Shown here one piece after another: positions 35,243 to 49,143 of a stretch of DNA of 52,462 nt (position 1 is the first letter of the stretch; each line of letters begins with the position of its first letter). Source of the stretch: Gracilinanus agilis (lineage: Eukaryota). Below the pieces are notes generated by a model, which worked only from the letters and a program-made list of their open reading frames with translations, searched no databases and was not told where the DNA came from. The translations under genes and the position numbers were made by a program. Where the stretch lies: assembly GCF_016433145.1 (NCBI RefSeq), contig NC_058133.1, positions 256,799,365 through 256,851,826 of the forward strand, given 5' to 3'.

Positions 35243-35677
35243 NNNNNNNNNNNNNNNNNNNNNNNNNNNNNNNNNNNNNNNNNNNNNNNNNNNNNNNNNN
35301 NNNNNNNNNNNNNNNNNNNNNNNNNNNNNNNNNNNNNNNNNNNNNNNNNNNNNNNNNNNNNNNNNNNNNNNNNNNNNNNNNNNNNNNNNNNNNNNNNNNN
35401 NNNNNNNNNNNNNNNNNNNNNNNNNNNNNNNNNNNNNNNNNNNNNNNNNNNNNNNNNNNNNNNNNNNNNNNNNNNNNNNNNNNNNNNNNNNNNNNNNNNN
35501 NNNNNNNNNNNNNNNNNNNNNNNNNNNNNNNNNNNNNNNNNNNNNNNNNNNNNNNNNNNNNNNNNNNNNNNNNNNNNNNNNNNNNNNNNNNNNNNNNNNN
35601 NNNNNNNNNNNNNNNNNNNNNNNNNNNNNNNNNNNNNNAGAGAGAGAGAGAGAGAGAGAGAGAGAGCTCTCTCTCTT

Positions 35678-40200: not shown

Positions 40201-40388
40201 NNNNNNNNNNNNNNNNNNNNNNNNNNNNNNNNNNNNNNNNNNNNNNNNNNNNNNNNNNNNNNNNNNNNNNNNNNNNNNNNNNNNNNNNNNNNNNNNNNNN
40301 NNNNNNNNNNNNNNNNNNNNNNNNNNNNNNNNNNNNNNNNNNNNNNNNNNNNNNNNNNNNNNNNNNNNNNNNNNNNNNNNNNNNNNNN
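40201..40388. other. Assembly gap (188 N) inside the TNF 5' UTR
   Basis: Run of n between the TATA-defined TSS and the ATG. Confidence 1.
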
Positions 40389-40476: not shown

Positions 40477-42150
40477 ATGAGCACAGAGAGCATGATCCAA
40501 GACGTAGAGTTAGCAGAAGAGGCTCTTCAGAGGAAGGCAAGGGGGCTCCAAGGCTCTGGACATTGCCTCTGCCTCACTCTCATCTCTTTCCTTGTTCTTT
40601 CTGGAGCCACTGTTCTCTTCTGCCTGCTGCACTATGGGGTCATCGGACCCCAGAAAGAACAGGTGAGAGACATAGAACATATTCAAGAGCCTCCCAATCA
40701 TTTAGCCATAGAAAAGGGAACAGAGAGAGATTGGGGGAAGAAAGATAAGAAGACAAAAAGAGGGAAAGAAACATTATAAGAGTCAGAGAGGTGGGAGAAT
40801 TGTGATAAGGGAGAAAGATGGGAAAAGGAAGCATAAAGAATGATAGAAAGAAAGGAATAAGGATAGAGGGAGCAAGGGAGAGACCTGAGGGAAAAGATGC
40901 TTAGAGAAATAAGGAGAAAGATGGAGTGATGGGGAAAGACAGAGGAGGAAAAAGAGATGAGATGAGAATTATGAGATGCATCTGAGTATACATCCCAACT
41001 CTTTCTTCTCAACTATCTTTGTCCATAATTCATCACTGACCCCTTCTCCTGTCTTTCTTCTCTAGGACTCTCCCAATGCTTTTCTTGACATGAAACCTCT
41101 GACCCAGAGAGTCAGTAAGTATCCTCTATTGATGATCTCAATCTCCTACACCTTTATTCCCAAGGGGGACATATCTGAGATGAGGATAGGGATAGGGATG
41201 GGGGAGCAGTTTTCAGGGGACAGGAAGCATTTCTGAATTTTTGGTTTCTGGTGGGGAGGGAATGAAAGCAAGTTAAAGCCCAGTATTAAACTTTCATTTC
41301 TTCATTCTCTTTTCTTCCCCATTCTAGGATCTTATCAGACTGAAAGTGACAAGCCTGTGGCTCATGTTGTAGGTAAGGATCTGAAACTTTGGAATTAGGA
41401 CCAAATGGGGCCTAGAATCAGGGGATTGGTTGAGGGGCAATATGGAACTTTGGGGATAAGTAGAGCCTATGGTGGGGGGAGTAGAAATATTAGCAGGGAA
41501 GGAAGAGAGACTGAGAGGAGAAGAGGATGGCTAGTATTAGAATAGGATGAGGGGGAATAGAGGGAATTCAAGAGAGAGGATTCTATGGGGATGGATAGAA
41601 TCTAAAGGATAGGACATAAAAGAATGCTTTGAACTTTAGAAAAAAGAACTGAGGAGAAGACAAAATTTGGGAAACAGATGAAACCCAGAAGAAACATGTG
41701 GATTCAACTTTCTCTTCCTCTTTCCTTACAGCTAAACCCACAGCAGAAGGGCAGCTCCAGTGGTCGAGTGGGTATGCCAATGACCTCCTGAATGGCATGG
41801 AATTGAAAGACAATCAACTAGTAGTGCCAGCCACTGGGCTCTACCTGGTCTACTCTCAGCTCCTTTTCAAGGGTGAGGACTGTGCCAACAAACCTCTGCT
41901 CCTCATGCACACCGTCTCCCGGGTTGCACGATCTTACCCAAACAAAGTCAGCCTCCTTGCTGCTATCAAGAGCCCATGCCAGAGGGCAGCACAAGGATCC
42001 AGGGAATCCAATCCCTGGTATGAACCAATCTACCTGGGTGGTGTCTTCCAGCTTGAGAAAGGTGATATGCTCAGTTCTGATACCAACTACCCAAATTATC
42101 TTGACTTTGCTGAGTCTGGCCAGGTCTATTTTGGAGTCATTGCCCTTTGA
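40477..42150 (+). CDS. TNF: Tumour necrosis factor, 232 aa; exons 40477-40662, 41066-41114, 41328-41372, 41732-42150
   Basis: [17 protein letters not shown]...TM...GVIGPQKEQ|DSPN...TQRV|[15 protein letters not shown]|[11 protein letters not shown]...[16 protein letters not shown]...[17 protein letters not shown]...[10 protein letters not shown]. Confidence 0.99.
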
Positions 42151-46444: not shown

Positions 46445-46624
46445 ACTGAGTAGAGGAAGGGGGTTACGCAATATGGAGGTGGCATCATGGATGGAAGTGG
46501 AGTGTGTGTGTACCAAGGTGCAATGGGGAACAGACTGAGTAGAGGAAGGGGGTTACACAATATGGAGGTGGCATCCATGGGATGGAAGTGGAGTGTGTGT
46601 GTACCAAGGTGCAATGAGGAACAC
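46445..46624. repeat. Two-copy tandem duplication of an 89-91 bp unit downstream of LTB
   Basis: actgagtagaggaagggggtta...gtaccaaggtgcaatg starts at 46445 and 46534; a few substitutions and indels. Confidence 0.95.
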
Positions 46625-46680
46625 AGGAGACAGAGAGCAAAGACAGCAGAGGAGGCACTGTCCATTTTGGTTATTTTTTG

Positions 46681-46686
46681 TTTATT
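46681..46686 (-). terminator. LTB poly(A) signal AATAAA
   Basis: tttatt on the plus strand, about 200 nt past the LTB stop. Confidence 0.65.
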
Positions 46687-46890
46687 ATTTTCTTACCATC
46701 TGGCCCTCTCTCCTTCCTTCCCTGGATTGCCACCCCCATCTGTTCCTTCCCCAACTATGACCACTATCTGGCCATTTGCCCTTCACTTCCTCCAGGGACC
46801 CTTTATCTGCACAAACCCAACTCCCCTTGTCTCCCATCAAGTCACTGACTCATAGGCCAGTGAGCATTTCCCTTAGGAGGTAAGCATCCC

Positions 46891-48977
46891 TCATCCCACC
46901 ATTACAGCCCCAAAGAATGTCTTCCCCCTCCTGAAGTCCACCATGCCAGGATGACTTACATTAACATAGATTCTCTCACCCCCTCGAAGCTGAGCCAATC
47001 CCCCAAACCCTACACTGGCATACCACAAGGTTCCCTTCCCAACCCCCCCGGCCTGCTGCACGATAGGGTTCACAGTATCAGCCCCCTGCAGCAGCAGTTC
47101 TGGCTCCCCCGACCCATAGGCGCCCCCAGTCCGATAGAGCCAACTACTGAGGATTACAGAGACTCCAGGCTCCCCAGCATGATGATGAGAGTGGGGTTGT
47201 TCTCCAGCAGAGGGAGCTCGGCCCCTGTACCCGATGTGACAGTACAGGAAATAGACTCCATCTTGGGGAAGGGCCAGCCCTTCATCCCCCAAGAATTGTG
47301 TTCCACTCTGCAAAAACGCTTCCTCGTTCTCTGACTCCCAGCAAAGCCCATGACATTGTTTTGGGACACCTGGGAAGAAATAGGGTGAAATGAGGAACCC
47401 TGTCTCCTTAAGAACCAACTCCTGCACGCTGAGTGATTCCCTCCCCATCTAACAAATTGCCTTGGAATCTGAGCTGGAACAGGCTGAATGTGTGGGAGAA
47501 AGGTTGAAAGATTGGAATTGGGGGAGGGCCTGGAGGGATGGAGGGATGGAGGGATAGAGAAGAGTTCCAAACAGCCTTGGGATTCAAGGCTGAGTTCTAT
47601 GGACCACAAATAGGTCTATGTATGGGAATCCAGATCTGGGTTATGGAAGAGAAAACGTATGCAAATTCAGGCTAGATTTTCTCAGGACACCAAGAACCAG
47701 GATGCTAAAGGAAAAGGAGAATCAGTGGGAGTCTGGGGCAGTAGGACAGACAGGAAGGGAACACCGACCCAGAATAGGAAGAATGCCAATAGGGAATGGG
47801 AAAAGAGAGTCTAGAGGAGGACTGGAGAACCAACTGGGGAGGGTAGGCGGGAAACAGTGGGAAATGAAAGAGGAAGGGAAAGGAAAAGAAAGGGGACCCA
47901 AAGAGCCCCATGAAAAAAGCCAGTGAGGAGGAGGTGTTCTGACTCCAATTCAGGTTTACACTAGATTCACTCCAGATTTATCTCTAATTTTCCCAATTTC
48001 AAGCCAATCCTCTTCCCTGGGTGAATCCAGGTTCTTACCTATGAGGTGTGCAGCTGGAGGAATGGACCTGAGATCTGATCTGGACTCCTCTGGCAGGTGA
48101 TGAAATCCTGGTGGGGGGAGGAAAAGGAGGGAAGAGAGAGAGTGAGAGATTGAAGGTCTGGGAGAGACCTTGAAGGAATCAAGGTTCTTCAGATCAGGCT
48201 AGATATCTGAGTTCATGAGATAAAAAGGGGTGGAATAAGGACCTGGGGACCACATCCAGATACTGGGAATCATCCTTACCCAGTTGCTGCTGCAATTGTC
48301 CTCCTGGACCAGAGGGGTCAGCTACCTGGGTGGGGAGACAGTCATCCTTACCCAGTTGCTGCTGCAATTGTCCTCCTGGACCAGAGGGGTCAGCTACCTG
48401 GGTGGGGAGACAGTGAGAGAACCATCACTACCTCCTTCTCTACTTGGACCCAAGAAATGGATCCTTCGGCTCCTGGCTCTCTTCTCCCCAAGCCAGAGAG
48501 TCACAGGAATCAGTGTGAAAATAGAAAAGAAGAAATTAAATTCTAATAACACAAGGAGAGATAGAAAAATTTAGCATGTATGACCCACAGGTGTCAGGAA
48601 AACACAAGACAATGGATGAGGTAATTGAGGATAGGGGTGTTGATGCTCATACAGAGACACATAGAGATATAAGGACACCAGGAATTTCGAAGAGATGGAC
48701 AGGGAGAGCCTAAGACACAGAATCTTAGAAAGAAACCAAGGCATAGTGAGAAAAACAGAGAAACTACACAGCAAAGGTGTGGATACAGAGAGAGACATGG
48801 ACAGCCACTGTTCACCTGTCCCCTCTGTTCTTGGGGCATCAGGGCCAACATAGTCAGGATAGTGAGGGGTATAGACAGCAGCAGAGTCCCCAATATTGCA
48901 GCTCCTATTGAGGCCACCAAAAGGCAACCTTTCTCATTAGGCCCACCAGCACGAGTCCCCAGCCCTGGAACCCCCAT
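46891..48977 (-). CDS. LTB: Lymphotoxin-beta, 251 aa (275 aa if the duplicated exon 2 is read as one exon); exons 48816-48977, 48352-48397 (duplicate at 48280-48325), 48039-48107, 46891-47369
   Basis: MGVPGLGTRAGG...TM...MPQEQRGQ|VADPSGPGGQLQQQL|GFHHLPEE...PAAHLI|GVPKQ...LALPQDGVYFLYCHIGYRGRAP...LWYASVGFGGLAQLRGGERIYVNVSHPGMVDFRRGKTFFGAVMVG*. Confidence 0.97.
48270..48413. repeat. Exact 2 x 72-bp tandem duplication containing LTB exon 2 and both splice sites
   Basis: 48270-48341 is identical to 48342-48413. Confidence 0.97.
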
Positions 48978-49017: not shown

Positions 49018-49143
49018 TTTCATACCCTTGGGGTGGGGTTACCACTCCACCACCACTACCATGTACACACCTGTCTGGGACTTTCCAAACACCCCTCTTC
49101 TCATCATGGTTCCTCCCCACCAACCCCCCAACCAAGTTTCCTG
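49018..49143 (-). promoter_or_regulatory. LTB promoter: TATA-like TATGAAA (49018-49024), kB GGGACTTTCC (49077-49086), ETS CAGGAAAC (about 49136-49143)
   Basis: Motifs within 170 bp upstream of the ATG; LTB is a known NF-kB/ETS target. Confidence 0.7.

Follow-up and report, generated by a model that had tools for sequence, protein, structure and literature searches.

The lymphotoxin-beta gene (LTB) of the opossum Gracilinanus agilis carries an exact tandem duplication of its entire second exon together with the core of the splice signals on either side. The duplication lies on the minus strand of the 52,462-nt stretch of DNA analysed here (the window), where it occupies positions 48270–48414; it is present in sequencing reads, the gene is otherwise intact and its 3′ end is transcribed. 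We regard it as a young tandem exon duplication, a kind of event that is already known. The reading that we favour, and consider likely, is that the duplication is genuine and derived, that it should yield a longer lymphotoxin-beta (LTβ) as a co-product, and that it is tolerated as a probably near-neutral young variant without having become an evolved switch.

The gene itself can be assigned with some precision. The coding part of exon 1 (48816–48977, minus strand, with the ATG at 48977) encodes the cytoplasmic tail and membrane anchor, exon 3 (69 nt) lies at 48039–48107, and the coding part of exon 4 (46891–47369), which includes the stop codon, encodes the TNF homology domain and is followed by a 3′ UTR (46673–46890, to the end of the transcript contigs) with an AATAAA at 46686–46681. 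Joined through a single copy of exon 2, exons of 162, 46, 69 and 479 nt, all with GT-AG borders, form a 251-aa open frame that is identical at 251/251 positions to XP_044529778.1 (lymphotoxin-beta, G. agilis), and the ATG-to-stop span of 2087 nt equals the annotated LTB span in GCA_016433145.1. A search with the exon-4 translation returned lymphotoxin-beta proteins only, the best of them from Monodelphis domestica (96% identity over exon 4), a protein that falls into one 90% cluster with XP_044529778.1, and the Pfam TNF homology domain (PF00229) covers residues 102–250 of the 251-aa product (E 2.3e-26). A hydrophobic stretch at about residues 19–47 makes a type II N-terminal membrane anchor; the exon-2 peptide follows at residues 55–70, in the membrane-proximal stalk, and the first Cys of the extracellular region comes at residue 98, with none earlier. 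The TNF domain, the best matches and anchor, and the four-exon structure and locus all identify the gene as the lymphotoxin-beta (TNFSF3) orthologue.

With respect to the locus, the last exon of a TNF-family gene lies 4.7 kb from LTB on the opposite (+) strand, at 41698–42150, and Pfam recognizes a complete TNF homology domain in its open frame (E 4e-34); it is probably the last exon of TNF. The two lie tail to tail, as is usual for the TNF/LT locus of the MHC class III region. Runs of N occur in the LTA/TNF part of the locus, at 35243–35638 and 40201–40388.

Several other features of the gene deserve mention in their own right. Both didelphids, G. agilis and M. domestica, share a Cys-x3-Cys (QCHGLCW, residues 98 and 102, about 47340–47355) where the TNF domain starts, whereas Cys is absent from this position in the other LTB proteins aligned, eight of them marsupial and two eutherian; it may form a lineage-specific disulfide. 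A His-rich insert of ~8 residues (e.g. PHSHHHAGE), encoded at 47180–47215 in exon 4, occupies a TNF-domain loop of marsupial LTB and is lacking from the aligned eutherian proteins. Upstream, about 100 nt from the start codon, the minus strand at 49076–49085 reads GGAAAGTCCC, the reverse complement of GGGACTTTCC and a perfect NF-kappaB-type motif; LTB is under NF-kappaB control, which fits this motif.

Tandem Repeats Finder described 48270–48414 as a repeat of period 72 with 2.0 copies, 100% matches and no indels, and self-comparison at an offset of 72 showed identity over 73 bases, as fits a pair of 72-nt units with 1 nt of microhomology at the breakpoints. Read along the minus strand, a unit comprises a 16-nt acceptor ending in CAG, the 46-nt exon and a 10-nt donor starting GTAAGG. 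In the order of transcription these are acceptor A, a polypyrimidine tract that is kept in the Tasmanian devil (48398–48413), exon 2 copy A (48352–48397, phase 0 to 1), donor A (GTAAGGATGA, 48342–48351), acceptor B, identical over its 16 nt to acceptor A (48326–48341), exon 2 copy B (48280–48325) and donor B (48270–48279), after which a 172-nt intron leads up to exon 3. Donor A and acceptor B together make up the 26-nt spacer (48351–48326) that separates the copies. The preliminary description of this DNA had delimited the duplicated unit in the same way, and both the repeat search and the offset comparison agree with it. What results is two homologous exons side by side that agree in length and phase and have an acceptor and a donor each. 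This is the sole exact tandem duplication of such size within the 52-kb window, in which two further tandem duplications scoring 100 or more are 94–95% identical, and an exact adjacent 72-nt repeat cannot have arisen by chance. A second tandem duplication close to the gene (46445–46623; 2.0 copies with a period of about 91, an identity of 95% and small indels) is non-coding, lies just downstream of the LTB polyadenylation site and is older than that of exon 2.

Because false tandem duplications are typically 100% identical, and because the assembly (Supernova on stLFR reads from one wild-caught male) was finished by GapCloser with ~50x short-insert reads (PMC8390783), either program might have created the second copy. 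The reads argue strongly against this. A ~25x run from the same species contains every sampled word of LTB, and since it covers introns and exons uniformly we take it to be genomic DNA; it probably comes from the animal used for the assembly, and hence it tests the assembler in one individual and not a population. At k = 31, the contig of the downstream flank (depth 25.3) extends 30 nt into the repeat, as far as 48299, and that of the upstream flank (depth 26.1) begins at 48385, 30 nt ahead of the end of the repeat. Between them are a 73-nt contig equal to the repeat unit, with a depth of 57.7 (2.2x that of the flanks), and a 59-nt contig (48313–48371) whose 29 words span only the junction of copies A and B, with a depth of 28. 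This graph fits the exact k = 31 shape of a true tandem duplication on both haplotypes. An assembler error cannot place junction words in the reads, so the duplication is present in the DNA; a false one should have left the junction without reads and the unit at single-copy depth, and the nearest run of N, at 40201–40388, is not close by. We therefore reject the assembly artefact, which the preliminary description had left as an option, and consider it extremely unlikely. The raw-read check proposed in that description thus confirmed the duplication, and its single-copy outcome was not seen. A paralogue or pseudogene that raised the depth of the unit was also considered and was rejected on account of the junction-only contig at flank depth.

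These depths also bear on genotype. A heterozygote should show depths of about 13 at the junction and about 39 over the unit, against the 28 and 57.7 observed, and the data fit two copies on both chromosomes, with the proviso that a 3+1 genotype gives depths identical to those of 2+2. The duplication had been thought possibly polymorphic; the reference animal, however, looks homozygous rather than like the carrier of a rare allele, and a single wild homozygote suggests that the allele is not rare.

The duplication is derived, since the Tasmanian devil has a single copy with matching flanks. In both devil assemblies there is one exon 2 with homologous sequence on either side, and the upstream flank with copy A and copy B with the downstream flank align to one and the same devil segment. 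Nine other marsupial LTB proteins contain the exon-2 peptide once (9/9), which proves little because the duplicated G. agilis gene is annotated likewise. The M. domestica LTB span of 2022 nt, 65 nt shorter than that of G. agilis, is consistent with a single copy there, as judged from the span of the gene and not from the annotated length of 251 aa, which the duplicated G. agilis gene has too. Sequencing runs of a second, heavily studied organism, presumably M. domestica, contain 8–18% of the sampled LTB words, the level expected of a relative that is about 5% or more diverged.

As for mechanism and age, the duplication probably arose in the germline of a didelphid by an event of the slippage type that involved 1 nt of microhomology and in which a 72-bp segment containing the whole 46-nt exon 2 and its core splice signals would have been copied in tandem. 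At a neutral rate of about 1–2e-9 per site per year, zero differences over 72 nt would stay above 5% likelihood to roughly 10–20 My. This is a weak clock, from which we estimate an age of roughly under 10–20 My; the identity of the copies had earlier been read as a sign of a very recent event, yet over 72 nt it bounds the age only loosely.

Four outcomes of splicing can be distinguished. Acceptor A used with donor B gives a fused 118-nt exon that is in frame, contains no stop and lengthens the product from 251 to 275 aa, the 24 added residues being KDDCLPTQ and a second exon-2 peptide, with one Cys; frame translation thus bears out what the preliminary description had said of this exon. The insert would follow residue 70, in the part of the protein that separates the anchor from the TNF domain, and the stalk is predicted to grow from about 54 residues to about 78. 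The normal mRNA results from either copy used on its own, A and B being identical, so that the earlier equation of the first donor with the normal protein is right as far as copy A is concerned but overlooks the second route. Inclusion of both copies as separate exons would shift the frame and lead to a stop at codon 72, and skipping of both would do so with a stop at codon 77. Since we infer that a 26-nt spacer cannot be removed by splicing, copies A and B should not be usable as separate exons.

Splice-site strength was judged by consensus matches, U1 duplex energy and motif scans. By these measures the exon 2 donors rank first among those of the gene: they form seven contiguous pairs with U1, at a predicted duplex energy of −9.7 kcal/mol. 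In studies of globin and adenovirus model substrates, not of LTB, two strong tandem donors both bound U1 in complex E and the intron-proximal one was used, its use rising steeply beyond ~30 nt of separation and reaching ~100% from 45 nt upwards (Hodson et al. 2012, PMC3413131). Because the strong, identical LTB donors sit 72 nt apart, donor B should prevail (PMC3413131); it would be used almost always, and a route through the first donor would be minor. The two donors had previously been described as identical and competing: they are indeed identical, but the published data favour the second (PMC3413131).

If donor B dominates, the ratio of short to long forms would be set by the competition of acceptor B with acceptor A, the upstream one leading to the long form and the downstream one to the normal form. 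Acceptor A has its native upstream context, with 14/17 pyrimidines, a CUCAC with its A at −17, which is conserved as UCAU in the Tasmanian devil, and a UGAU with its A at −28. Acceptor B has kept its AG, with 12/17 pyrimidines and a single branch-point-like UGAC with its A at −17; this A lies 10 nt into donor A and overlaps the U1 footprint of that donor. U1 on donor A and U2 on the branch site of acceptor B would therefore be mutually exclusive, as in mutually exclusive exons of the steric type. Since acceptor A keeps its native branch context while that of acceptor B clashes with donor A, acceptor A should often be used and the long form is to be expected; it would be a real co-product alongside the 251-aa LTβ. 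On the same reasoning, the chances that the long form makes up 20% or more of LTB mRNA seem to us about even. That the fused 118-nt exon dominates LTB output in G. agilis, or at least accounts for a major part of it, giving a stalk longer by 24 aa with an unpaired Cys, is a more tentative proposition, to which we would give somewhat less than an even chance.

Transcript data cover the end of the gene. Three small transcript-like runs (contig sets of 37–91 Mb, from one study but different samples) have one contig each at 46673–47017, at depths of 6.5–8.5; these take in only the 3′ UTR and the final ~125 nt of coding sequence, end just past the AATAAA and contain no splice joints. Since they cover its 3′ end, LTB is transcribed, and that end is detectably expressed even in non-lymphoid tissues, the RNA-seq available for G. 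agilis being from kidney, muscle and liver. The NCBI annotation of the locus gives a single 251-aa product without isoforms, which is weak evidence for the short form as the model may be homology-driven. A literature search for LTB exon-2 isoforms found nothing relevant. In human LTB, an exon-2-skipping isoform exists.

Four known systems invite comparison. Tandem exon duplication is the origin of mutually exclusive exons, including those in which a donor and a branch point too close together cause steric hindrance (PMC5740500). The LTB copies resemble such exons in being adjacent, equal in length and phase and equipped with their own splice sites, in having a spacer far too short for splicing, and in the frameshift that joint inclusion would cause, so that the barrier to joint inclusion is that of a mutually exclusive pair. 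They differ from them in that the copies are 100% identical and either choice gives the same mRNA, hence no distinct proteins arise from the choice of exon. In addition, unlike in typical mutually exclusive clusters, the 26-nt spacer is open in frame and a fused exon is possible. The classical steric mutually exclusive pair is that of exons 2 and 3 of alpha-tropomyosin.

In its two identical, strongly U1-complementary donors, 72 nt apart, LTB is also like the tandem-donor substrates of Hodson et al. 2012 (PMC3413131), but with the difference that in LTB an identical acceptor has been duplicated as well and sits between the donors, where a clash of U1 with U2/U2AF is predicted. A human tandem duplication in FGG likewise doubled a donor, and normal splicing became a rare event; that case had escaped routine methods and came to light in read alignments (PMC9052919). 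However, the FGG duplication copies the donor only, is out of frame and pathogenic, and its segment is long enough to act as an intron.

The closest parallel for the protein comes from rodents. Splicing of Ltb in house mouse, rat, deer mouse and woodchuck makes no use of the exon-2 donor, and the equivalent of human intron 2 is translated, making rodent LTβ much larger (302 aa in the deer mouse; PMC2605436). In our alignment, the insert of Apodemus LTβ comes directly after the exon-2 peptide and it, too, contains a Cys. The fused opossum exon would similarly lengthen the stalk at the exact exon 2/exon 3 junction by means of former intron sequence, although the rodent state reflects a loss of the donor that is old, as its presence in all four species shows, and a constitutive insert of ~60 aa, as opposed to a duplication and an insert of 24 aa in the opossum. 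Since rodent LTβ carries an insert at the same junction, a longer stalk is compatible with function, which makes the opossum long form plausible, yet less surprising. Among predicted LTB proteins, Rhinolophus sinicus isoform X2 (275 aa) and that of Capra hircus (273 aa) have extra residues immediately behind the exon-2 peptide, as though intron 2 had been kept; minor read-through at the exon 2/intron 2 junction may recur among mammals, or these may be artefacts of prediction.

The main competitor of the reading that we favour is that the duplication has no effect on splicing, one copy (B with B, or A with A) being used essentially always and only the 251-aa LTβ being made, without phenotype. 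This is a serious possibility, although we would put it at a little under an even chance. It agrees with the single NCBI product and with the state of the animal, which is homozygous and wild-caught, and acceptor B, with its AG, a 14-nt pyrimidine tract and the UGAC at −17, could together with donor B define the ancestral 46-nt exon. On the other hand, acceptor A has the better native context and is closer to the donor of exon 1, and exon definition works poorly on exons shorter than 50 nt whereas a length of 118 nt is ordinary. Furthermore, the NCBI annotation may follow homology, the RNA-seq comes from kidney, muscle and liver only, and the doubled donor of human FGG did make normal splicing rare (PMC9052919).

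The same FGG allele, which gave mostly aberrant transcripts (PMC9052919), would be the precedent for a hypomorphic allele, in which four splice signals crowded into 144 nt disturb the recognition of exon 2 so that skipping or intron retention lowers LTβ. The shortness of exon 2 (46 nt) and the stop at codon 77 that follows when both copies are skipped would be in keeping with this, but the splice signals are all strong, the allele is homozygous in a wild adult and expression of the LTB 3′ end is seen even outside lymphoid tissues, and we think such an effect unlikely. Still less probable, in our judgement, is an evolved and regulated switch between short- and long-stalk LTβ with distinct functions in reach, shedding or disulfide linkage. 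That the fused exon is in frame, free of stops and supplied with an additional Cys, that the allele is homozygous in a wild animal, and that stalk length at this very junction varies naturally between rodents and other mammals might all be cited in its favour. Against this, any duplication has a prior chance of 1 in 3 of being in frame and the lack of a stop in a 26-nt spacer is nothing remarkable, the identical copies give no sign of divergence or selection, and identical strong donors at 72 nt predict one-sided rather than balanced use. The functional switch reading is probably overstated, and we return to a tolerated, young duplication with the long LTβ as a co-product.

That tandem duplication of exons can supply new protein segments and mutually exclusive exons is recognized, but the examples are usually old and diverged. 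In LTB the copies are 100% identical, confirmed by reads and set in an intact, expressed immune gene, and they amount to a natural experiment in which the spliceosome faces four identical strong signals in 144 nt. The NCBI 251-aa model gives no hint of the duplication, and comparisons at the protein level would miss it. If the fused exon is a major product, this would be an independent lengthening of the stalk at the junction where rodents lengthened theirs, and a rare glimpse of a newborn exon duplication whose copies have yet to diverge, with a too-short spacer merging two exons into one. The case could show whether the LTβ stalk can vary freely in length: production of the long form would offer, beside the rodents, a simple comparative test of the role of the stalk, and if it is absent, the gene would be shown to have silently absorbed the duplication of an exon.
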